A stretch of 62,771 nucleotides of DNA, the filler included, from Polymyxa betae A26-41 (taxonomy: Eukaryota > Protista > Endomyxa: Phytomyxea), in NCBI GenBank assembly GCA_003693705.1. It is 4 parts of 4 records of this genome, joined end to end, with 100 filler letters (N's around TTAATTAATTAA, not from the genome) between each part and the next. Parts side by side here need not be neighbours in the genome. Positions count along the whole stretch, not along the records: positions 1 to 26,468 come from RBZT01000464.1; 3 more parts are not named here. One strand, given 5' to 3'. The notes under the pieces are model-generated. The model saw only the letters and a program-made list of their open reading frames with translations. It was not told where the DNA came from and ran no database searches. Both the position numbers and the translations under genes were made by a program. Positions 2,918 to 19,368 of this stretch are shown piece after piece. The number at the start of each line of letters is the position of its first letter. The first letter of the stretch is position 1.

Positions 2918-3043
2918 CTCACCTCTATCTCCGACTCACCTCTATCTTCGCCTCACCCCTGTCTCCATCTCACCTCTATCTCCGTCTCACCTCTATCTCC
3001 GCCGCACCTCTATCTCCGTCTCACATCTTTTTTCGTCTCACCC
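2918..3043. repeat. 17-bp minisatellite (~7 copies, CTCACCTCTATCTCCGT) in the Gypsy 3' region
   Basis: Directly visible tandem copies. Confidence 0.9.
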
Positions 3044-3336: not shown

Positions 3337-3568
3337 TGTGACGCGAAGTTTTTATTTTTACTTTTAATTGTTTATTCTGCTACTGATATTGGTTTCCCCC
3401 TTACCTCTCCGCGGACACCGCAACCGCTTCTCTTTCTAATAATACAGCGAGAGTTCGTTGTCTCTGTCTCAACAAGAGTCTATCTCGTCTCTCTTTCATC
3501 TCTCATTGTAATTGGTCTTCCGACCCCCTGGTCGCCTTATATAGTTTCTCACGATTCTATCGATCACA
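3337..3568 (+). repeat. Probable 3' LTR of the first Gypsy element
   Basis: Starts TGTGA right after the PPT; candidate TCACA end at 3568. The right end is uncertain because it overlaps the head of the 325-bp array. Confidence 0.55.
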
Positions 3569-4760
3569 TCCTAAGCACTGACGCCAATCTGGACGTTCAG
3601 GTCAGTCTTCCGTTTTTTTTCTGGCTTTATACAAGTTTCATATGAAACGCACCGTTAGGGGATACACTTGTTGGCTGAATGGCCCCTCCAGGTCTGTGTG
3701 GCATTGCTGCTTGTTCTTTCATGAGATATACGTCTTAAACTGATTGTTCTCGTGTATAGGTCGGGGCGGTCTGGGTTCTTGCTGGCGATGTTGGCTTCGA
3801 ATCGGTACATTTTTCACTATCGGCTAGTGTGGATGCTGACACTTTCTGAAATTCTCTCTCTTCTCAGTTTAATAGCGCTCTAAAAGTTTAGTTTTTCAAT
3901 ATTTATAAAAGCAGTTGGCTGCTTTTAAGAATGCTTTTTCTGTTCATTTTCTTCGGTCTTGTCACAGGTGGACGAGTTTGATTTCACATTTCGGGGGCCA
4001 GACTAGCATTGCTTTTTGTTCAACCTATAGTTTGTGATGCCTGTGATGATTGATTTCGTGTATAGTTCGGGCGTCCGGAGTTTTCGTGCCAGTGATGGCA
4101 TCGAATCAAAGGTACTCTCTAAATGTTTTTATCTTCTAGGGTGGATGTTGCCCAATATTGAGATTGTTTCTCTCTTTCAGTTTAATAATGTTTTTAAACG
4201 TTTTCTGCAACGCTTAAATCAGTAGGTTGCTTTTACATATGCTTTTGTCTCTCTATTTCAAAGGATTTCGTCACTGATGGTTCGCACGATCTCTCCTTTT
4301 CGCTTGCAGGGCCTTCTGAGCCCATCTATCATTGCTGTTTGTTTATGCTACAGATTGCATACTTTGTGCTGACAACTCTCGTATATTGATCTGGGCGTCC
4401 CAAGTTTTCGTGGCGGTTATGGTGTCGAATCAAAAGTATTCCCAAATTCGTTTGAAAATTTTTTGGGTGGATGATGCCCAATTTTGAAATTTTCTCTTCT
4501 CAGTTTATTAATGCTTATAAATGTTGTCTTCAACTTGTAAATCTGTTGGTTGCTTTTACAAATGCTTTTGTCTTTTTATTTTTCTGGGTCTCGTCACTGA
4601 TGTGGCGCTCGATTTCTCCTTTTCGCTGGCAGGGCCTTCTGGTTTCATCTAACATTGCTGTTTGTTTATTTTAAAGTTTGCATACCATGTACTGATTGTT
4701 CCCAGGTATAGCTCGAGGCGGCCCGGGTTTTCGTGGCAGTGATCACATCGAATCAAAGGG
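3561..4760. repeat. ~325-bp diverged tandem array, copy 1 (head plus ~3 units)
   Basis: Marker GGATG(C/T/A)TG(C/A)C recurs at ~3831, 4143, 4469. Head 3561-3830 is homologous to 6285-6560. Confidence 0.9.
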
Positions 4761-4775
4761 GTATGTTAATGTAGT

Positions 4776-4811
4776 CTAGGTTTCCCGTAGTCCGTTCGGA
4801 ATCGAACGGAC
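4776..4811 (-). terminator. Helitron 3' terminus: GC-rich hairpin and CTAG
   Basis: Perfect 9-bp stem GTCCGTTCG/CGAACGGAC (4790-4798/4803-4811) lies 10 nt from CTAG (4776-4779). The flanking base is not the canonical T. Confidence 0.75.
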
Positions 4812-5499
4812 GTTTGTTGCTAGTCCGAATCTTTTGCTCGTGCGCAGCTTGGTGTTTGGGCGGCGTTGTACGACGATGTTTTTTGTTAGCACGAAGGGTC
4901 CCCGTAGCATTACCGAAGCGTCGTACCTCGCTCGATCACCGACCCGCTAACGCGGGTACCCTGGTGATGGGCTCACAGTTGTCACCCTCAGCGAAGCCAC
5001 CACTTACATCGCTCGATTACCTCGCTCGATCTCCGACCCGTTGACGCTGGTACCCCGGTGATGGGCTCACAGTTGTCACCCCCAACGAAGCCACGGCCCA
5101 CTCGTAAATCTCCATAAAATTTGATGAATTTTCATTGTTCACACAGCATGTCCCAAGTTGGCAGAAACCGCTCGCAAAAAACGGGACTTTTTCAGTGATT
5201 TTTGAGCGAGAAACGTGATTGCACTCTCGATCGCTATAGCAGTCCGTTCGAGGCGTACTGGTCCGTGGCCGCCCGAGCGCGGTCCGTCCTCGGGTCGCAT
5301 GTCGAAGGATTCGGCGTCTGCTGGTTCGTCCTGGAACAAAGCACACGTCTGTGGTGATGATGATTACAATACCGTGCTTGTTTTTCTTTTTTTGTGTTTC
5401 GGTTGATAAGGACAAGGAGGTTAATCTTCGAAAGATGCGCGCGGACCACTGCGGCTGGGTTATCAATCCAGCCCCGGTGCGTGCCAGATTTCTACTGAC

Positions 5500-5980
5500 T
5501 AAACCACCCCCTTTGTTTGGGTCGACGGGGAACGAACGACCCTGCAACTTACAGGTTGCGGAACTGGCGGACAATGTCCGGGTAAACGACATTTCGGGCA
5601 TGGAACTGGCGCCGGCTGCAATCGAATGGAGCAAGGACATGGAGATTCTACGGACTGCCGACACGGGAAAGCGCCACGCAGAGCCGGCAATGCGAGAAGA
5701 CTTGGTCTTTTATGCAGATTCCAACCAAGGCTCTGCCCCTGCGCCTTGTTGATGGTCATGGCGAAGGCCGGCTTGATTGGGAATTGGCGGCGGCGGAACG
5801 CGATCGGGAACTGGGTGGGCGATGGTTTTAAACCCATTCGGGACAGGAAAACGGATTCTCCAGACCGTGTGCCGGTGACGATGCGGCATCGCAGGACGGT
5901 ATCGCGCACAGTCTCGATGATCAGTCTGGTTGCAGAGTCCGGCGTCCGGGTCGATATTGCGGATGAAAATCACGGACATG
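5500..5980 (-). pseudogene. Helitron Pif1 helicase, C-terminal part
   Basis: MSVIFIRNIDPDAGLCN ... RRRQFPIKPAFAMTINKAQGQSL. Joins 8752+ in frame (RVKPG|MSVIFIRNID) once the insertion is removed. Confidence 0.9.
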
Positions 5981-8751
5981 CACACCGGAACTGCGCTTGT
6001 CTGCCCTGACATGCCTTTTCCTACGACATTCTGCCAAACGCAGCGGAAATATGCGTTTTGGATTGAAAACTGCAAAAAACATGCTTTTTGCCAAAAGTGC
6101 GCTTCGGAACCAGGATCAGCAATGTGAGACCATCCGCAAAAGTCTGCGTCTCTATCTTATTCTAACTGCGCTTTCATGCGAAATACAGATGCAATTTCTT
6201 GCAACGCAACATTTTTTATTTTAACTCCTTGTCAGTTCGAATCGCTCTTCTAACCATTCTTGTCATATAATTTCTCTCTCCAACCGATCACTTCCTAAAC
6301 GTTGACTCCGACCTGGACGTTCAGGTCGTTCTTCAGGAGTGTTTTCAGTCTTTGTACCCGTTTTATATCAAAAACACATCGTTAGGACTTGTTGGCTGAG
6401 TGGCGCCCCCTGGTCTGTCTGACATTGCTGTTTGCTCTTTCATCAGTCATTACGTACGCCTCAGACTGATAATTCTCTGTATTATAGGTCGGGGCGGTCC
6501 GAGTTACTTGCAGACGATATTGGCTTCAGATCGGTAACAGTTTTCAGCAATCTTATCCGTTAGTTTGGATGCTGCCCATTTTCGAAATTCTATCTCATCT
6601 CAGTTTATTAATGTTTTTATAAGTTTTCGAAATTTATACAAACAGTTGGTTGCTTTAAAGAATGGGTTTTCTGAACCTTTTCTTCGGTCTTTTCTCTGAT
6701 GGGACGCAGATGATTCCATCTTTATGCTTGAAGGGCTTTCTGGGCCAGTATGGCATGACTGTTTGTTTGATCTGTAGTTTATATACACTGTGCTGATTGT
6801 TTTCGTGTACAGTTCTTGGTGGCCCGAGCTTTCGTGGCGATAATGGCGTCGAAACGAAGGTAACCTGTATATTTTTTTCGGCTAGGTGGATACTGCCCAT
6901 TTTCGAAGTTTGATCTTTTCTCAGTTTATTAATGTTTTTATAAGTTTTTTGAGTTTATTCAAACAGTTGGCTGCTTTTATGAATGCTTTTTCTGTACATG
7001 TTTTTCGGTCTCGCAGCTGATGGGACTCATATGATTGTAAATCCGTTTTCCTTGAAGTGCTTTTTGGGCCAGTATAGCACGACTGATTGTTCACTCTGCA
7101 GTTTGTATACAATGTACTGACTATTTTCGTGTATGGATCGGGGTGGCTCGAGCTTTTTTGGCGATAATGGTGCCGAAACGAAGGTAATCTGTAATCTGTA
7201 AATCTTTATCGGCAAGGCTGGTGCTGCCCATTTTTGAATTTTATCTGTTTTCAGTTCATTAATGCTTTTAAAGTTTTTCTGCATTTATTAAAGCAGTTGG
7301 CTGCTCATATGAATCTCTGATTGGATGTCTATGATTTCACATAGCTGGTTGCTTTTAGGAATGATTGTTTCTTTCGATTTTTTCGGTCTCGCCGCTGATG
7401 GGACGCCTATGTTTCTCCTTTCCGCTTGCAGGGCCTTCTGGGCCCATCTAACATAGTTTTTTGTTTGCACTATAGTTTGTATACCCTTCGCTGATCTTTC
7501 TCGTGTGTAGATTGGGGCGGATCGAGTGTTCGAGGCTGAAATAACATTGAATCGAAGGTATTCTAATTCTATTTTGTCGGCTAGGGTGGATGCTGCCCTT
7601 TTTAGTAATTTCTGTCTTTCAATTTATTATTGCTTTTGAAGATTTTCTGTATGTTTAAGAATTGTTAATTGCTTCTATGAATGCGTTTTCCTTTCTATAT
7701 TTTTGGCTCTCCTCGCTGATGGGAAGCACGAGATCTCATTTTCACCTGCAGGGCCTTCTTGACACTTCTAACATTTCTGCTAGTTTATTCTATTGTTTCT
7801 ATACACTGCACTGATTGCTCTCGCGTATAGATCATGGCGGTTCGTGTTTTGAAAACGATATTGGGGTCGAATTGAAGGTAAACTTGGTAATTTTATTCGG
7901 TTAGAATGGATGCTGCCCATTTGGAAATTTTCTCACTTCTCAGTGTATTGATGCTTTTTAAGGTGTTCTGCAATTGTTAGAATAGTTGGCTGTTTTTACG
8001 AATGCTCTTATCGTTCTATTTTTGGGTCGCTGATTGGACGCACGGTTTCTCCTTTTCGCTTGCAGGGCAGGGCGTTCCGGGCCCTTATATCATTTCAATT
8101 CGTTTATTTATATATTCTATAGATCTTTACCCTGTGCTAGCTGATTGTTCTCGTGCTAACGCTGTGGCCGCTCGCGTTTTCATAGCGATGTAATTATCGA
8201 ATCGATGGTAAACTTGCAAGATTTTTTCAGCAAGTGTGGATGCTGACCATTTATCAAATTTTCTCCCTTCTTAGTTTATTCATGCATTTAATTTCTTCCA
8301 ACGTTTTTATTGCTTTCAATGGTCGTTGCTCTGCTCCCTTTGCACGGGTCGTTGCTGTTTGAACTGAACGTGCCCGAGCTGTTGCTCGTGGTGCTGAAGT
8401 TGCTGAACCTGCTGGAGCGGATGGCAATCTATACTGCTATTCTTTTTTGTGCTGATGCAGCTGGTGCGGCCAGATGCTGTACTGGTACAGCTGCTTGCTT
8501 TCGGTGCTTCGTTCTAACTAACGTAATAAACTCGAAAAGTAATCTCTGTTTAATATAATTACAATTAATGCCCTATCCTAAAAGCGAATTAGTTTTCATG
8601 CAGAAATCTGCAATGCTCCGCGAATATCTGCGAACAGAACCTGCGATCCCACGCAATTCCATGTGCAAAATTCTGCGTGAACTTGCAAAATGGCCGTGAA
8701 AATTCGCAGGTCCAAAAACGTTGGGAAACGCAGGTCCACGCAGTTCCGGTG
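5981..8751. mobile_element. Non-autonomous TIR DNA transposon (CAC...GTG ends, 3-bp TSD; CMC/CACTA-Chapaev-like) carrying a tandem array
   Basis: Left end CACACCGGAACTGCG, right end CGCAGTTCCGGTG. ATG is duplicated at 5978-5980 and 8752-8754. Excision restores the helicase frame. Superfamily assignment is inference. Confidence 0.85.
6285..8295. repeat. ~325-bp diverged tandem array, copy 2 (head plus ~5.5 units)
   Basis: GGATGCTGCCCAT-like marker at ~6567, 6888, 7220, 7588, 7908, 8238 (period 320-368). Confidence 0.92.
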
Positions 8752-11345
8752 ATGCCCGGCTTGACTCGAAGACGGTGTAGAGGCATGCCGCCCGGGTTCG
8801 CCTGGTGCACGACTTCGATTCCAACTGCGGCTCCATTTTCGTTGGCGTCATCGGCGTCAATAGCATCGACAGAAATCAGCTCGTGGACGTCACCGGGCAG
8901 CAGCTCGAGACAGCCCTGGTTGATCTCGTCGGCCAATGCGTTGGTTGTGGTGAGAATGTAGCGTGAGGGCAAGTTGAACTGCGTGTCGTCGAATCGAAGC
9001 ACCATGACCGGGTAGACCGCATCGATCAGGGAGCGGATATCGGTGGAGAACGGCGCACTGTTTGCCAGGCAGTGCGACATGGGCAGCTGAAGAGTGATAT
9101 GATGCCTGAATCGACCATTGGGAGAGTCATCGAAGTCAGGCGCCACGCCATCTCCAACTTGCGGCTGCCTGCTGGAGAACTCGACTTGATCTCGGACGTC
9201 GTCACCTTGGTCAGCTGCCATCTGGACTCGCATGTTGACCGTCAGCCGTAAAATGCGGACCGAGGCCCAGAGATGTGACGAAACGATGCAGGCGTTCACA
9301 AGGCCGGACGCGCCCCCACGGGAACCGCGGGCAGAATCTGTCGCGGATCGCCACCCAGATGATGACTTAGCCACCGAATGGAATGTACGGACAGCGGCAG
9401 AGTTCGCGATATAAACGGTCAACGGCTTCGAAACAATGCCGATGCTCCAATCAAACTCTCGTCCCACACAGTCCGCGCCGATCTTCGAATCGATTCGGCC
9501 AACTCTGAGTCCAAGGGCAGGCCACAGACGCTTTCGCTGTCCAGGTTGTGGACCGGAACACCGAACGTAGAATGAGCGGTTCGACCGACGCGCAGCAGGA
9601 GGGCCGAGATTCCCGACGATGAGCAGGCAATGGCGGTTCCGCCATTGGATCGGACGGCATCAATGATCCCGTTGATGGTGAACGTCTTCCCGGTCCCCGC
9701 CGGGCCCATCAAGAAGAAGAGCTGCGGACGCCGACCAGTAACAGCCGCCATGATCTCGCTGAAGGCAACATGCTGGTCAGCATTTATAGCGTCGAGCACA
9801 GAATCCGCATCGCGAGCGTCAGAGTGGGCGTCATGTGCGGGCAGGTCGTCGATGTCGAGGTCATGGGCGTCGGAAGAGAGGTGGGGCAGCATCCATCAGT
9901 CGGGGCAACGATGGGAACTCTTCAAGACCCGATCCCATTGAACTGAGCATGGCCGACAGCATGCGGAGCGCGGCGGCCTCTGATTGACCATGATGACGTC
10001 GACGAAGGTCTTCCGTGAGGGCGGGCAGAAAAGTAGTCCAGAGTGTTGCGGGATTGGCGGGGCTACAGTGGACCAGGATCTGGGCGAAGAGACGGCGCAT
10101 TTGGCCGGTCATCTTGAGCGTCGATGCTTCTCGCAGGCATCGCTTCCATTCACCGTCGTGTTCCAGCAGACCGCGCGCAATGCACGCTTCCTTGAATGGA
10201 GGGCAGGGTCGCTGTTCAAACGTACAAACATCAATGTATGAGCAAGGACCGCGTACGTCTGTCAGCAACAGCCGCAGATGAAAGCGTTCTTCGCTGCGGG
10301 GATTCACGAACGAAAGCCGAGCGATAGCCGGGGCGTGCTGCCTGCGTGTCCGTGATTGCCAAACGCACGACTGGCGATTGAATGAGTATGTTGCGGGAAC
10401 ATCTTGGTACAGCAGATGTCGGGCGGCTTCATTCTCCCGACACAGGTTGAAGAACGCTGTCAAAGTGGTGTTGGGCGGACCCTTCTCCACGATTCGGCGT
10501 TGTCAGGGTCAAAGAGCACATGCTGCTGTCCCTCCAGATGGACCCCAAGTCGTAAGACATTGGGTGCGTGCCAGCGCATTAAAAATCCTAGGTCAAAGAA
10601 CGTGTCAGTTTCATTATCCACAAACTGATCCGCAACATCACTGACCGAGCAACGATACGCGGCTTCAAGCTGTGTTACCCACCGACCGTTGGCATAGTCG
10701 TCGATCTCGTTGACAACCGGATGCTCATCTGCGGAGTCGCTGGTAGCGTCGGGTTCCGAGCGCGCTCGGATTGTGGCCTGGTTTTGAGCGTCGAACCGCC
10801 CGCCGACCTCAATGGCAAACGTTGCTCAGTCGTGACCCATGTGCACGTACTTAAATAGGTACTTCACGCTGCCGATCGAGAAACAGCATTCGACATTGAC
10901 GTGAGTATCCTCAATGAGTGAGGTCGTCGGGCTGTACGGGACCACGTTCCGATTGGTCAAGACCATTCCGGGACGTACGTCGAACGATCGTCCATCATCT
11001 CGGCGTCGGTACCTATTTCCACTGAATTCCAAGCAAAATGACATGCAGGTGAAAAGCAACGGACAGGGAAAACGCTGAATCACGAAATTCCGTCGTATCT
11101 ACAAACTGCTTCGGATACCTATAAGTTGAAAGCGATCAGTGCGCGCAATATGATATTTTGGCTTTACCCTTATCTACAATCAGCATCGCCGTCGAGACAT
11201 CGAGTTGAGCACCGGTGCAACATTGTCCGCGTGATCGTATCGTACAGCTCCGGGTTCAGGGTTCGATAGGGCAGCTCCGAACACTTCAGAGCGTCAATAT
11301 CCTCCGGAGTCCGAAGCTTGTCGTCGGTATGCAGCCACAATATCA
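8752..11345 (-). pseudogene. Helitron Rep/Pif1 helicase, N-terminal and central part, with spliceosomal introns
   Basis: ORFs 11170-11385, 10826-11083, 9861-10490, 9419-9892 and 8589-9467 are frameshifted pieces. GT-AG introns at ~11110-11167, ~11013-11064 and ~10589-10646 restore Rep motifs. Confidence 0.88.
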
Positions 11346-11620: not shown

Positions 11621-11701
11621 TGTCTACTCTACGATAGAGACGAAAGAGACATCAAAGACAATGTTAAAGAGAAAGAAGAATTAAGATTGTTGTATTACTT
11701 A

Positions 11702-12228
11702 GAGACTGGTTCAAGTAAAAAACGCGGTACCGCAATTTATTAAACGAGCCAGTCAGATTTCGACACCTTCAATTCCGTGGCGCTATATTTTAATGGACCC
11801 TCTGGGGGTCCATTTCTCAGAAAACGCGGCATTTCTTGGCCAATTATGAATCTATTGCATCACGAATTGGCGGTTTTGATGGGCGTTTTGTTGCTGCTCT
11901 TTACTTCTTTGAAGAACTGACAGTAGGTGTCGAATATCACAGCCATAAAACTTTAAATCATTTCGTTGCTCCATCGAACATTGCTCTTGGTTTGCAGACA
12001 AATGTGGAAGTATCGGTCAGCTTAGCTGGAGCAGTTGATGCTGACATTGGCACTCCAAACTGCCTTCCCAGAGAAGCCAAGATGTCTGCAGAGAAAGAGC
12101 GCAGCCTCCGGAAATAGCGGAAAATAGCGGTGCCGCAATTTTTCCGCTATTTCCGGAGGCTGCTACTTTTTCACTGGAATATTTATTCCCGCAATTTTTT
12201 TCCGCAATTATTTACTTGAACCAGTCTC
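11702..12228. mobile_element. PIF/Harbinger non-autonomous derivative (527 bp)
   Basis: TIR GAGACTGGTTCAAGTAAA / TTTACTTGAACCAGTCTC; TTA TSD at 11699-11701 and 12229-12231; same TIR as 15187-17881. Confidence 0.93.
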
Positions 12229-12962
12229 TTACACGGATTATTTTACGTGCGAACACCAAGTGGTGGTCGCAAGAAGACAAAAATAGCAGAGAAACGACAA
12301 AAATAGTGGAGGAACCATGCGTAAACGCCACTTCACCCTCTCGAGGTCTTTTAAAATAGGAAAAAATATCATGTAAAACACGTGCTGCGGTAGGAAAGGT
12401 AGCCTTGAGTAACAGGGGATATCTTTCTATAGATATTTTGCATCTTCCCAGGAATCTTCAACTTCAGTGAAACCACGCCATCGGACTACTAACTGCCAAT
12501 GACGACGTTCGAGTTTTTGCATCCAAAATATCTTCAACTTCGTAAATAGCGGATTCTGCAGCAACATGTTGAAGCTCAGATGTGAGGTTAAGCGAGCTAT
12601 CAGAATAAATTTGGAAACGCTGTGAATGAACGTCAAGTTGATGATGGGAAATCAAATTTTCAATTCGGAAAACGAAATCGGAAATGCATTCGACGACACT
12701 AGCAGGACCCTGCCACTTATTTCGTGAGTTTTTGACGAGATTTAAATGGCGTATAGTAAAAGACGTAACCTACAGAGAACCGAGGTTGCGGAGACCGGCG
12801 CTTTCGGTTAGCACGCTCGTGAGATTGTCGCCGAACGTCAGTAACCTCACGATGCATATCACGCATGGAGAGTTGCAAATCAGAAATTCGAGCATCGAGC
12901 TCATCCTTCGACAAGGGGACTGTTATGAAGTTTCGAGTGACAGGGGACCAGATTGCATCTAA

Positions 12963-13583: not shown

Positions 13584-15333
13584 CTAAAGGTGAGCTGGGA
13601 TGAGACCCAGTATGTAACGTAATTGGAGCGTTGACAGAATCCGGAGATATAGCGTTATTTAAAGCAAAGCGAACAAGAGGAGGCCATTGCTGGCGAGTGA
13701 GACGTAATTCAGAGCATCACGATCGGAAACCATTCAGAATTTAACGATTGCAATTTTCTATAGAAGCATGCGTCCACGGGGCAATTAACTTAATGAAATA
13801 GGTGGTTAGAATGAAGCAGAATAGACAGTTCAGAAATAACTTGGTTAAGAAAACGTGAGCCTTGATCAGAAATTCAGGTAAGAACAACACCATGACAACT
13901 GAAGTACAGTAGTAAGGAGTCGGCGGTATGTGCAGCATAGGGAACTGAATCAGGAAAGAGATCGCATAACCCGGAGAAGCGATCTCGAACAATGAGAACG
14001 TATTCAAGGCCTGAGTCCGAAAATTCAAGCGTCAGATAATCAAAATGTATTATATCATTAGGTTTTCGGAGACAACTTGAGAACCAAAAGGGCGAGGAAT
14101 TGATTCACCACTGCGAGAGGATATACAATGTAGGCATTGCTTAACAAAGGCGGAAACATCATCACGAATGCCTTTCCAGTATAATCGAGCAAGAACAGAT
14201 GATAAAGAGCGATCACCACGGTGTACAGCAGTACCGCAATGAGCGACGATAGAAATGGGTAAAATAAGAGCAGAATCTTCTTCATGTACCAGAACGATTT
14301 CACCTTGGAAAAAAACGCCACATTCTTTTGAGAAAGTCTGAGATTCGACAACAAACCGATTGGACATCAGGATCGTAAAATTTTTGCTGAGATTCGATGA
14401 CAGTTTCAAATGTTGGAAATTAGAAATCATGGGATTCCATAGGAGAAATTTGTCCAGATGGAATGGCGGAAACACGACAAGCACTGAGCACGATTTGTAC
14501 TTCAAGGAGCCGCCCAGCGTGTTGGCATATCGGCCCACACATTACGTTCACCTGGAATATGTTCAATGGTGTAATAAAAGGAAGAAAGCTTGAGACTCCA
14601 ACGATGTACTTAAGCGGAATGCTAGAAGCCGATGGATCAAAGATGAGTACCAATTCCTATGATCGTTGAAGATGTGGAAGGGCTGTTCACCAATCAACAA
14701 GTAATCGAATCTGGAAATCGCAACGATGATAGGAAAAGATTCTTTCTCTGGTATTGACCAGCGTGACGAAGCTCACTGAAAAGTTCGGCTATCGAATGCT
14801 AAAGGCAGATGTAACTGCTCAGAGATAGGCTTCAATATATCAGATGCCGGAGCTTGTGTAACCATAATAGAACAGAGACCACCAAATGAGTGGGTAAACA
14901 AACATTTCTCTAAATCGGGGAGAGGATTTGAAAGCTCAACAACATGATTCAAAGCTTCGATGATAGTTAGGAAATATGATTCAGTTTCAGAAGTCCAAAG
15001 CGAAATTGGAAGCGGAACACGTTTTGCGGACTTTTTGAGCGCTCAGAAGAGCCTTGAAGAAGCGACTTTAGAAGCGAACGAAGTGGAACAACTTTCTGAG
15101 CGAATAGAGGAATATGGAGAGCTAACAACTGGCAAGCGCACAGGAACTGCTTAAAGTCACCAGCGTTATGTGGATGAGGGAAGTTAGATACTGGTTCAAG
15201 TAGAAAAATTGCGGGAATAAAAATTCCAGTGAAAAAGTAGCAGTCTCCGGAAATGGCGGCACCGCTATTTCGTGATAGCGGGGCCTCCATTTCCGGAGGC
15301 TGTGCGCTGTTTCTCTGCTGCCGTCTTGGCGTC

Positions 15334-16186
15334 ATGGGTAGGCAGTTTTGAGCGACCATTTTGTCACCATCTGTTCCAGCTGAACCGGCGGAAACTTCCA
15401 CACCTGTCTGCAGCACTCCTGCTACCAAGCGCCGTGGGAGGAAGCCGAAATCCCAAACCGGGAGCAGTATCCGTTGGAATAACGAAATGATCGAAAGTTT
15501 AATGACTGCAAGATTCAAAACCTACGGTCAGTTCTTCAGAGAAGTTAAGAACAGCCATAAACTCTCGGAGGGGTGGTCAAAAGTCGCATACGAGGTTTGC
15601 AAAGTGACCAATCAAATTGTCAATGGCGAAATATGCCGTCAGCAATTCGGACGATTGCAGACAAAATGGCGAGACCACAAGCCTGAAGGAAAAGAATCTG
15701 TTCGAACGGGTAACCAGGATCCCGGCAATAACGTAAAGGACGACACGTTTGCCACCATTTAGCCGTTTTTTTGAAAAAGCCGGGCTGTGGCTCTAACTTG
15801 GGCCAGGCCACTGATGATCATGATTCGACGCCGGAAGCTGCTGACAGCGATTCATCCTCTGACAGTGAAATCGAAATGCAACCGAAACCCATGAAACTGT
15901 TCAAGCCAGACCTGCCAAAAAGCCGCTGACTTCGGCTGAAGGAATAGCAATGCTAGGGCAGTCGTTTGATGGAGTTGGAATCAAAGTTGCTGAGGGACTT
16001 AGATCGATAGCATCGTCATTAGGCTCTAGGACCTCTGGCAATGACGACATCATGAAGTTCCTTGACAAAAATCGTGAGGAACGAAGAAAATGCGAGAAAC
16101 ATTGGATCGTGTTGCTTCGATTCAGGAAGCGACGTTGCAGTTTATGCCGAGATTCATGTCTAATCAGTAAAGATGGCTGGTTATGA
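15334..16186 (+). pseudogene. Harbinger Myb/SANT-like DNA-binding protein
   Basis: KRRGRKPK, RWNNEMIESL..WSKVA..CRQQFGRLQTKW trihelix pattern; internal stops. Confidence 0.8.
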
Positions 16187-16229
16187 TTTCCAGAGATAAT
16201 CTCGGATAGAGTCCCGCTTGCGTTTTGCA

Positions 16230-17726
16230 ACCTCCCCTGGTATTGCTTGTGCTTCTTCGCCATCTCCTCCTGCGTTGCGTTGCGTCGGATGTCATCATCG
16301 TCACGTTCCTCATCGTCATTTAGATGAATGAAGATATTGTGCAAGATGAAGCAGGCTCGAATCACTCGCGACGTCTGCTTCACTGCAACCTTTTCCGGTC
16401 TGTTGTTGCTATTCCCGTTGTTAAGATTGCCTTCCTGATTGAGAACGGATTTGAAAATGCGAAATCGGTTCTTCAATCTTCCAAGGGTAATTTCAACAGG
16501 CATCCTGGTTTGAGAATGCAGATGATTATAGATTTTTCCTTTCTGGTCATACCATCGTGTATCTCGTATGGAATCATACAGTGGGCAAAGAACTGATAAC
16601 CCGCATCTGCAACAATCATCTTGTCATTCGGAAGCTTCTGCGTAATCGTCTGTCCGAATTCCGATCGGTTATAGACACCTCTATCGTTTTCAGATCCCGG
16701 CCGCAAGCAATAATCTCGATTTCTCATCTGGTAATCAACAACAATCTGCGCGTTGATAGCAGGATAACCCTTTCTGCAGTACCACCCTTCATAATCTGCA
16801 GGTCGTTCAATCGCGATAAGGGAGCCATCAACAGCTAGGCATGTGTCGGGAAATCCACAAATTGCTTCGAAACCTTTCGACAGATCCTCCCATTCATCGA
16901 GCGCTTCAGGCAAGCGAATAAATTTACGCCCCAGACACTTAATGAAAACGCGGATAACTTGATCAATGTACCGAACTGCTGACGCTTTGCTCAAACCAAA
17001 AACTCCAGCAGAGTAAACAACAGATTATGAATGCGTTAAGTAATGCAGACGAACTGCGACACGATCACGATGGAAGAACCGAGCGTTATGACTGATCACA
17101 GAGTTGACTGCATCCCAAGCGGTTGTAATGTATACCTGTTGAGTTTCTGCTCCGGGAAGCGGCTACTATTTAGAGCGATGTGAGCTAAACACAATCAATA
17201 ACAGAATGAATGTATTATATAAGGAAGTCAGCGTCTTATAGATGCCCCAATTAGGACCTGCTTCATATACCTAGAAACTCCGTGGCTGATTTTACATGTA
17301 CAGTGGCTGCTGCCCTCGGCACTGTACTGCCAGAGGAGAGGAAGTGCATGTCGGAGTTTTCCATCTGCACTGGAGGGCTTGATGTCTCCTGACTGACGGT
17401 TAATGTAGGGATACTAGTCGAGCGGCAGCACATATCGTAGATGAGATTGGCTTCCTGCTCAAGAATCCCACAATTTTATCAAAAGACGACTTGTTACACT
17501 GATTCCGAAACCATCATTCGTCGAACCATACGTTTGCATCGGCTATGGGAAATTGTGAGTCGCGAATCGACCATCCAACCGATGCAGGCCGTCTGGACGA
17601 GCGGCCATCCCAAGAAATATCAGACGCCGCCAGGACAGCCGTAGTGAGACAGCTGGTCAATGTAATTTGGACAGCAGCGCCCAAAGCGCCGATCAAAGCC
17701 GCCACTTCGTGGTCAGATAGGTTCAT
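16230..17726 (-). pseudogene. Harbinger DDE transposase (HARBI1-like)
   Basis: GFPDTCLAVDGSLI, CRKGYPAINAQIVVD, PGSENDR, VADAGY, VEITLGRLKNRFRI, ACFILHN; frameshifted. Confidence 0.92.
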
Positions 17727-19368
17727 GATTGGCGAAGAAACGCCGATAATTATGAGAAATGGACCCTCTGAGTGTCCATTAAATAATAGCGCAAAAATAG
17801 CGCCACGGGATTTCGGGGGTCGAAATCTGATTGGCTCGATTGAAAAATAGCGGTACCGCGTTTTTTACTTGAACCAGTCTCATACAAAGAGCAAGAATAC
17901 GATCTGGATCATTTGAAACACCGGTTTGACAATATATCAGGCCACACCAGCGAACAGAGGTACAGTAGAAAGTACCGCGAGCTGCATTTAGCTTCAGACC
18001 GTATTGACGACAAAACGGAAAGATCTTCTCCAGGAAGGACTGCAGAAATAAATCGTCCGGGCAATGAAGCAGTAAGTCATCAACCCAAATCAATAACTGC
18101 TCGAGAGATAATGAAGGACGAAATATAGAGTCCATTGAACTCTGAAATGCAAAAACGGAATTTAGATTACCTTGTGGGAGACGCAAAGGTGTGAATATAC
18201 CTAAAGACGTTATCATCGACTGACTATCTTGTGCCAGAACCACTGAAAAGCATCCAGATTACAGAAGCATTTGGAGAAAGTAAGCACCAACTGTCAGTAA
18301 ATAAGGCATAGGGTAGACGAGGCGTTTTGTTACGGCATTTGGAACGAGTAAATCGCAGACCGAACCAAACGATGTAGATGGTAAACTAGACTTCGCAACA
18401 CCGAATGCTGGAGAGGCCCAACAAGAAGAAGCGTTCAGATATCCATAGTCGAAATCAATCAACATTTGAAAATGCTGGGAAAAAAACTTGCGATGGAGGG
18501 GTGGGTACCGTCAAAAAGGACAGAGCTTCGGTTCAGCATTAGCTAGAAGTGCAATGGATACTGGACGAACTTTAACTGGTGGATCTGGTCTCAACTTCAA
18601 ATGAAATATATCGACACAATCACGAACTAGACGACGTAAGCCATCAATAAAGTTTTGAGAAGCGTGATCAGAAGCTTTGTCAACAGCACATTCAAGAGTA
18701 GACATGACCTCAGAGTGATCGTCGAGACAAAATTCGACAAAATCAGATTCATCATCGGCCACAATGCTTGTTTTCGCGGAGGGAGTTCTGTCAGTAAATT
18801 CAGAATGTTGACTAGAAGCGATATCACATAATTGTTTTTCAACATCAATGCCAAGACAGAGTAACAGCGGACGACCTACGAGGGCATCCGGCATGGGCTT
18901 ATCGGCGACATGGTCGCGATGGCGGCGGACAATAACCGGGCCAGCGATAGCACGAATATGAGTATCGAGAAGAGTGGTAAATGTTACAGTAAGGGTTGAG
19001 CCATCAGCAAGTGTGAAAGAAAAATCAGGAGGTTCAATTTCAGGATTGGCTGACAGTAAATGTTCCCAGGCATTAATACCCATGATAGTAACATCGGCGC
19101 CATCATCAACTGCAGAGGTGAAATTTGTTGGGCACCATTAACTTCAACAATTACACGCGAAATACGAGAGATCGGTTTCGAGAACAAAGCCGTCGGAGAA
19201 AAATCTAAGGCAATAGCCCTACATAAAGACTGCTCAACAAGAAGAGGATCCACAGCAAACTCAGGCTGCGTTTCGGAAATTGAGGAACCTGAAAATGATA
19301 ATTGGGATCTGGCAATGAAGGAACGAAATCAGCAAGTATCGAGGTTATGGGTAAATGGATGAAGATTC

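Follow-up and report, generated by a model that had tools for sequence, protein, structure and literature searches.

The window analysed here, a stretch of 62,771 nucleotides (filler included) from Polymyxa betae A26-41, contains an internal-deletion derivative of an EnSpm-type (CMC) transposon of about 8 kb from the same genome. This derivative is very probably a non-autonomous member of an EnSpm-type cut-and-paste family, and its 323-bp tandem array belongs to the complete transposon as non-coding sequence rather than having been captured as a gene. The same module was found in a second carrier, which is assigned by its encoded domains to the CryptonF family of tyrosine-recombinase transposons, and its presence in both EnSpm and Crypton suggests that transposons of two unrelated classes have exchanged a module.

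The element is bounded by perfect inverted termini of 13 bp (5983-5995 and 8739-8751), with an imperfect extension to about 22 bp. ATG target-site duplications flank it at 5978-5980 and 8752-8754, as judged from the sequence and from an excision test, in which deletion of 5981-8754 restored the frame of the interrupted PIF1 helicase (KPG-MSV). The precise insertion proposed in a preliminary description of this DNA, with terminal inverted repeats and an ATG duplication, was thus borne out. That description had the element start at 5981; the CAC..GTG element is real, but the family terminus is at 5983, where seven other left ends begin exactly, and an alignment of eight left ends places the CA at 5981-5982 outside it, as an extra dinucleotide of the window copy only. 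The interrupted host is a PIF1-type helicase region of a Helitron-like element (5499-9892, minus strand; Pfam PF05970, E=2e-27 and 2e-6), of which a genome-wide search returned no close copy with an empty site. The left terminal inverted repeat (5983-6004, plus strand) is the 3' terminus when the element is read in the direction of the transposase. It is followed by an EnSpm-type subterminal region (6005-6205), which is 85-88% identical to the left ends of seven other copies and holds AAATCTGC-type motifs. The same motifs recur inverted at the right end, twice on the left and four times on the right, and constitute the subterminal direct and inverted repeats characteristic of EnSpm/CACTA elements. 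Within the array, which is read on the plus strand, a diverged partial unit (6370-6564) precedes five full units of about 323 bp (6565-8235; 321, 331, 369, 320 and 330 bp), which are T-rich on this strand and lack a codon signal, and a last partial unit (8236-8310) closes it. The 369-bp unit owes its length to a 48-bp internal duplication. The total is about 5.7 units, in agreement with the approximately 5.5 diverged units described before. A CTG/CAG-rich spacer (8310-8545), with an AATAAA at 8525-8530 on the plus strand, leads from the array to the end of the transposase and is also present in the transposase-bearing copies. Alignment with the copies on contigs C177, C571, C732 and C452 identified 8568-8590 (minus strand) as what is left of the final codons of the transposase frame. 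The right arm (8596-8751, minus strand), consisting of subterminal repeats and the terminal inverted repeat, is the 5' end in transposase orientation and is 83-85% identical to the transposase-type copies.

The genome (27,085,814 bases in 1,001 contigs) was searched for related copies. The window element gave 45 matches, and its 13-mer terminus occurred 29 times, against 0 for a control. An 8.2-kb element at C177:5771-14011 has the same ends, an AAA target duplication and the same array, and no intact transposase copy was seen among the genome copies read. Both ends were present, and a target duplication testable, in two copies only, the window copy (ATG) and the C177 copy (AAA), and each gave 3 bp. 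The C177 element has a transposase gene between its array and right arm, encoded on the other strand from the one read in the preliminary description, and the same gene is found in partial copies on C732, C452, C571 and C188 (88-94%). The order of the parent (about 8.2 kb) is 5' terminal inverted repeat, a piece of an upstream ORF, an intron-split Tnp2-like transposase, the CAG-rich spacer, the array and the 3' terminal inverted repeat, and the transposase-bearing copies carry 6-8 units of the 323-bp array behind the transposase.

The transposase was assigned to the Tnp2 type (Transposase_21) in these sister copies from a PF02992 match, the motif order and the codon signal, which agree. The Pfam match (E=0.0023, on one exon) was below the curated cut-off because single exons alone could be scored. 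An H(3)H motif, cysteines spaced CxC and the positions of the catalytic D/D/E are visible in the translation as read from the sequence, and comparison with homologues gave a clear synonymous excess (z=4.7, 5.9 and 6.5), which served as a positive control. The recurring stops in the gene are accounted for by seven short introns of 45-55 nt; an alternative genetic code was rejected, as the stops sit in these introns and are a mixture of TAA, TAG and TGA. The CAC..GTG ends in short inverted repeats and the 3-bp target duplications are the features by which fungal EnSpm elements were classified (PMC12730594), and the earlier assignment to a CMC-like element holds with these ends, the duplications and the Tnp2-type transposase of the sister copies. 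The ends read CACCG, not the CACTA or CACTG of plant CACTA elements in the strict sense. Related Tnp2-type transposases occur at about 40 loci of the genome (42-97% amino acid identity), several of them near termini starting with CACCGGAACTG (C13, C124, C259, C374, C419 and C887), and these loci represent a radiation of EnSpm-type families. A metagenome scan gave one relative of the transposase, on a contig that ends before the position of the array. Two other observations concern such elements. At L042:1-288 (plus strand), an open protein-like piece without a Pfam match lies upstream of the EnSpm transposase on the same strand and is possibly a second gene of the element. At L045:759-2217, the end of another family has the same first 16 terminal bases and an internal repeat in common with the C177 right arm.

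Relative to the parent, the window copy retains the right 156 bp and then lacks about 5 kb, its sequence continuing within the final codons of the transposase frame; the deletion junction is at 8591-8597. This junction is common to four copies at different sites, the other three being on C778, C636 and C641 (79-88% identity around the junction), and the deletion form is therefore itself a family. The transposase of the family, for which the element ends suffice, would have mobilised the deletion lineage in trans and produced the 3-bp duplication. Since the array is also present in the transposase-bearing parents, it is an inherited 3' subterminal satellite and not cargo captured by the window copy, and of the two origins offered in the preliminary description, the transposon-borne satellite is the one that agrees with its position inside these family members. 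A second copy of head and array, truncated to about 3.5 units and without termini, lies at 3536-4759 (plus strand) and is 87% identical to the C177 element. This copy, the transposase-bearing parents and the Crypton-borne copies described below were all absent from the preliminary description. In a tree of the units, the middle units of the transposase lineage form a clade of their own, and the last units of both lineages are sisters. Such a pattern, with terminal units shared between lineages and middle units multiplied within a lineage, is expected of slippage or unequal exchange. The array may thus be seen as a passenger satellite that would turn over by duplication and deletion of units inside the element, without selection for a protein.

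For analysis of the array itself, 51 units were aligned; they fall into 18 types, with 71% identity between types and 94% within them. Nearly fixed block lengths had been claimed for the units. In the window, the 41-nt block was found in 5/5 units, the 79-nt block in 4/5 and the 47-nt block in 5/5, but the block given as 88 nt varied from 86 to 136, and over the genome the modal lengths were kept in 31/51, 30/51 and 39/51 units, with changes of 1, 3, 4, 5 and 16 nt. The splice-like signals fared similarly. AAG|GTA had been assigned to each unit, and AG|GTA is present in 10/18 unit types only; the supposed TGCTG(A/C)C branch site reads GCTGCC, lacking the branch A, in nearly all units. The splice-like signals are real in part: the plus-strand consensus has three motifs of a branch followed by the first YAG against 0.28 expected in shuffles (P~0.004, post hoc), and the opposite strand has none. 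These motifs are denser in the unit than in shuffles, T-rich control windows and the transposase gene (0.78 per 323 nt). Conservation of the branch sites and of most donors was not detected (P=0.64-0.86). The acceptor AGs changed by 0.88 steps, against 2.13 in base-matched columns (P=0.009, uncorrected, in eight tests), and a 14-bp motif was conserved (P=0.01 after window correction), the same motif having been the anchor for picking units. One candidate intron of 52 nt, with its branch 15 nt before the AG, resembles the introns of the transposase; it is the only one of such a length, and most acceptors have no donor at 45-55 nt. An AATAAA after the array, on the same strand, is conserved. Altogether, the splice-like signals form no coherent gene.

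The unit may nevertheless derive from an intron-rich transcript. One alternative, which we consider less likely than not, is that the unit is the relic of an intron-rich gene once convergent to the transposase, either a lost second ORF or a captured host fragment, which would have died and then been amplified as a satellite inside the element. This proposal concerns the origin of the unit alone and is compatible with a non-autonomous EnSpm element. The restriction of the motif enrichment to one strand, the transposase-like 52-nt candidate intron and the AATAAA on the same strand speak for it. However, neither a donor nor a relative was found in Pfam, the genome itself or protein scans, most acceptors lack a suitably spaced donor, and the nearly open frame on the T-rich plus strand is expected by chance, as it appeared in 40% of shuffles (P=0.40). 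Moreover, one ancestral unit amounts to a single draw, and the motif was picked post hoc.

The head and array also occur, with 3 units, at three loci of another kind. On C377, C259 and C265, the EnSpm spacer is missing, and a recombinase gene ends with its stop codon directly at the array. The predicted product has NDC10_II (E=2e-47) and GCR1_C (E=1e-22) domains, and on C377 its frame is open for 483 codons. CryptonF elements are defined by a tyrosine-recombinase-like domain with a C-terminal GCR1_C, no terminal inverted repeats and terminal direct repeats of 4-6 bp; the domains of this protein agree with the definition, and its homologues are in oomycetes, fungi and an aphelid. The Crypton-borne copies are 89-95% alike. 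C377, C259 and C82, a fourth locus with the Crypton end, have a different outer end in common, which lacks the EnSpm terminal inverted repeat, and the 3' end of the Crypton-borne copies matches that of a sister Crypton. The sister, 80% identical, was found on three soil metagenome contigs; it has about 137 nt from the stop codon to the same outer end and no array. The module of about 1.5 kb is therefore an acquisition of the Polymyxa Crypton lineage. Many other CryptonF-type recombinase genes are present in the genome, with long open frames on C426, C508, C983 and C851.

The Crypton-borne module contains two EnSpm subterminal motifs. Its identity is 87% with the head of the window element and 80% with the transposase-bearing lineage, compared with 78% between the two EnSpm lineages; in the window element, the head and array part at 6121-6880 is nearer to the Crypton-borne copies (82-90%) than to the transposase-bearing EnSpm copies (70-80%). 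The motifs and the 87%, 80% and 78% identities are all explained by one transfer, from the lineage of the window element into the Crypton. We therefore consider it probable that part of an arm of a window-lineage EnSpm copy entered the 3' UTR of the Crypton and then spread with it. The route may have been a nested insertion that was later trimmed, or a recombination event where the two shared a short stretch of similarity. The reverse direction, in which duplication of a stretch with the last codons gave rise to the array at the Crypton 3' end and the EnSpm family acquired it later, appears unlikely. It draws on a 52-nt similarity, right at the junction, of unit positions 40-98 to the final ~17 codons of the Crypton read in antisense (score 37 against 27±2.5 in shuffles and up to 34 in genomic controls). 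However, the remaining unit matches neither the gene nor the 3' UTR of the sister Crypton, and a profile of the unit gives no score at the end of the gene. In addition, the EnSpm subterminal motifs within the module and its unequal similarity to the two EnSpm lineages (87% and 80%) mean that a birth in the Crypton needs two transfers.

The arrays of EnSpm and Crypton lie in the same position and orientation behind an enzyme gene and stop at the same unit phase, just past an acceptor-like CAG. Together with the mild conservation of the acceptor AGs and the 14-bp motif, this could mean that the module still has a function. It might give a spliced non-coding RNA antisense to the transposase or recombinase gene, or serve for protein binding or termination; three lineages would then keep it in the same place and orientation because of this function. 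We regard such a function as improbable, since branch sites and most donors are unconserved, the column variance is neutral overall (substitutions per column near Poisson, variance/mean 1.05), neither an Rfam match nor a stable fold was obtained (z=-1.3), and the orientation agrees by chance in half of cases. It would be just as improbable, in our estimation, that head and array form an exchangeable 3' module regulating the adjacent transposase or recombinase and are kept by DDE and tyrosine-recombinase transposons for that reason. Transfer of a passenger from EnSpm to Crypton is the reading that we prefer.

The coding potential of the array was assessed from 446 distinct substitutions in six frames, over the whole unit and over each proposed exon block. 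Over the unit, the synonymous share did not depart from expectation in any of the six frames (|z|<1.4), compared with 4.7-6.5 for the transposase control, and the proposed exon blocks gave best z values of 0.34, 1.02 and 0.81. Even with the best frame chosen for each block, the sum was 55 synonymous changes against 47.5 expected (z about 1.3). In simulations, a 255-nt stretch gave z of about 3 at omega 0.5 and more than 5 at omega 0.3, with less power in single short blocks. Indels of 1, 2, 5, 16 and 19 nt inside the proposed exons are fixed in whole unit types and break the frame, and the exons add up to 115 or 131 nt, neither of which is divisible by three. The frame that had been described as weakly RNI-LRR-like needs read-through of a conserved stop and gave z=0.35. 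Searches of Pfam, the genome itself, a word search and a full scan of 1.8 billion representative proteins gave no real relative of the array, which was searched as natural stop-free pieces, the 41- and 47-nt blocks being too short alone (<20 aa). All matches of the unit in the genome, by DNA and by protein, are on contigs carrying these arrays. The only match of the large protein scan (P0002, E=2e-11) was an artefact, in which seven 7-bit matches were summed over an unrelated 321-bp satellite without DNA similarity to the array unit. An unrelated homogeneous 321-bp satellite (31 copies, 98%) on an ENA contig (ERZ26692669, L053) is called as genes of 750-850 aa, with false profile matches through score summation. 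Several other candidates were rejected: coding on the A-rich strand as a TnpA-like second ORF (at least five stops per unit in that frame, z<1), a Q-, S- or L-rich spacer protein (|z|<=1.4 in any frame, no Pfam match, Atlas scores <0.8), a structured RNA (no Rfam match, fold z=-1.3) and an origin of the unit in the transposase gene or in a shorter sub-repeat (no similarity).

A present function of the array as a protein gene is thus very unlikely, and the earlier proposal of a repeated exon/intron module, still or recently coding for an RNI-LRR-like repeat protein and captured Pack-style, can hardly be maintained: its splice-like motifs and the block lengths stable within the window are outweighed by the presence of the array in transposase-bearing parents, the absence of a codon signal, the frame-breaking indels fixed in whole unit types, the exon sums and the lack of an LRR or any other Pfam match. 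Pack-CACTA elements consist of non-autonomous CACTA ends around non-transposase sequence. The window element has similar ends, but a host donor gene for the array was not found in Pfam, the genome or the protein scans, and its interior derives from the parent.

Tandem arrays near the 3' ends of CACTA-type elements, and deletion derivatives of such elements, are already known, with precedents in PMC8978399 and PMC7320549. The Jozin CACTA of Chenopodium (Belyayev et al. 2022, PMC8978399) is likewise of the Tnp2 type and has a tandem array between its coding region and 3' end in several copies. Its unit is 171 bp, whereas the Polymyxa array has a 323-bp unit, about 29% divergence between units and 3-8.5 units; here, the host is a rhizarian, the ends are CACC rather than CACTA, and the array is shared with a Crypton. 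Deletion derivatives of CACTA elements in Triticeae, cited in PMC7320549, are similarly non-autonomous and carry the tandem repeats Afa and TM-2; as a difference, no free-standing satellite of the 323-bp unit was found in the Polymyxa assembly. Fungal EnSpm elements (Kojima 2025, PMC12730594) are similar in termini, length of the target duplication and H(3-4)H motif, although their C(2)C motif appears here as CxC. Passengers (TET/JBP genes) pass between transposon lineages in that study, whereas the shared passenger of Polymyxa is non-coding. The YR and GCR1_C protein is also that of CryptonF and of MarCry-1_FO (Kojima and Jurka 2011, PMC3212892), the latter a precedent for chimeras that combine a DDE transposon with a Crypton. 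In MarCry, the Crypton is mobilised by its DDE partner, whereas in Polymyxa only a non-coding arm fragment is shared and each transposon keeps its own ends. CryptonF was known in the 2011 survey from fungi and oomycetes only (PMC3212892). Neither an EnSpm nor a CryptonF family was found described for a plasmodiophorid in the literature searched, and both are worth recording. The module of about 1.5 kb is a clean natural case of non-coding DNA passing between mechanistically unrelated DNA transposons, with the empty state visible in the sister. The array also illustrates how a T-rich satellite can look like an exon/intron repeat and lead gene prediction astray.

The window as a whole is a nest of transposon remains. 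A perfect hairpin with a 9-bp stem (4790-4811), of the kind expected where a Helitron has its 3' end, lies beside the end of the truncated array copy and is followed by a 94-bp tandem duplication (4924-5094). A 17-bp minisatellite of 7.4 copies is at 2918-3042. Several inverted matches of 56-111 bp and hairpins of 24-28 bp at 11700-12230 and 15180-17880 surround a DDE_Tnp_4 (Harbinger-type) nuclease remnant (16473-16994), and are probably nested copies of one family.
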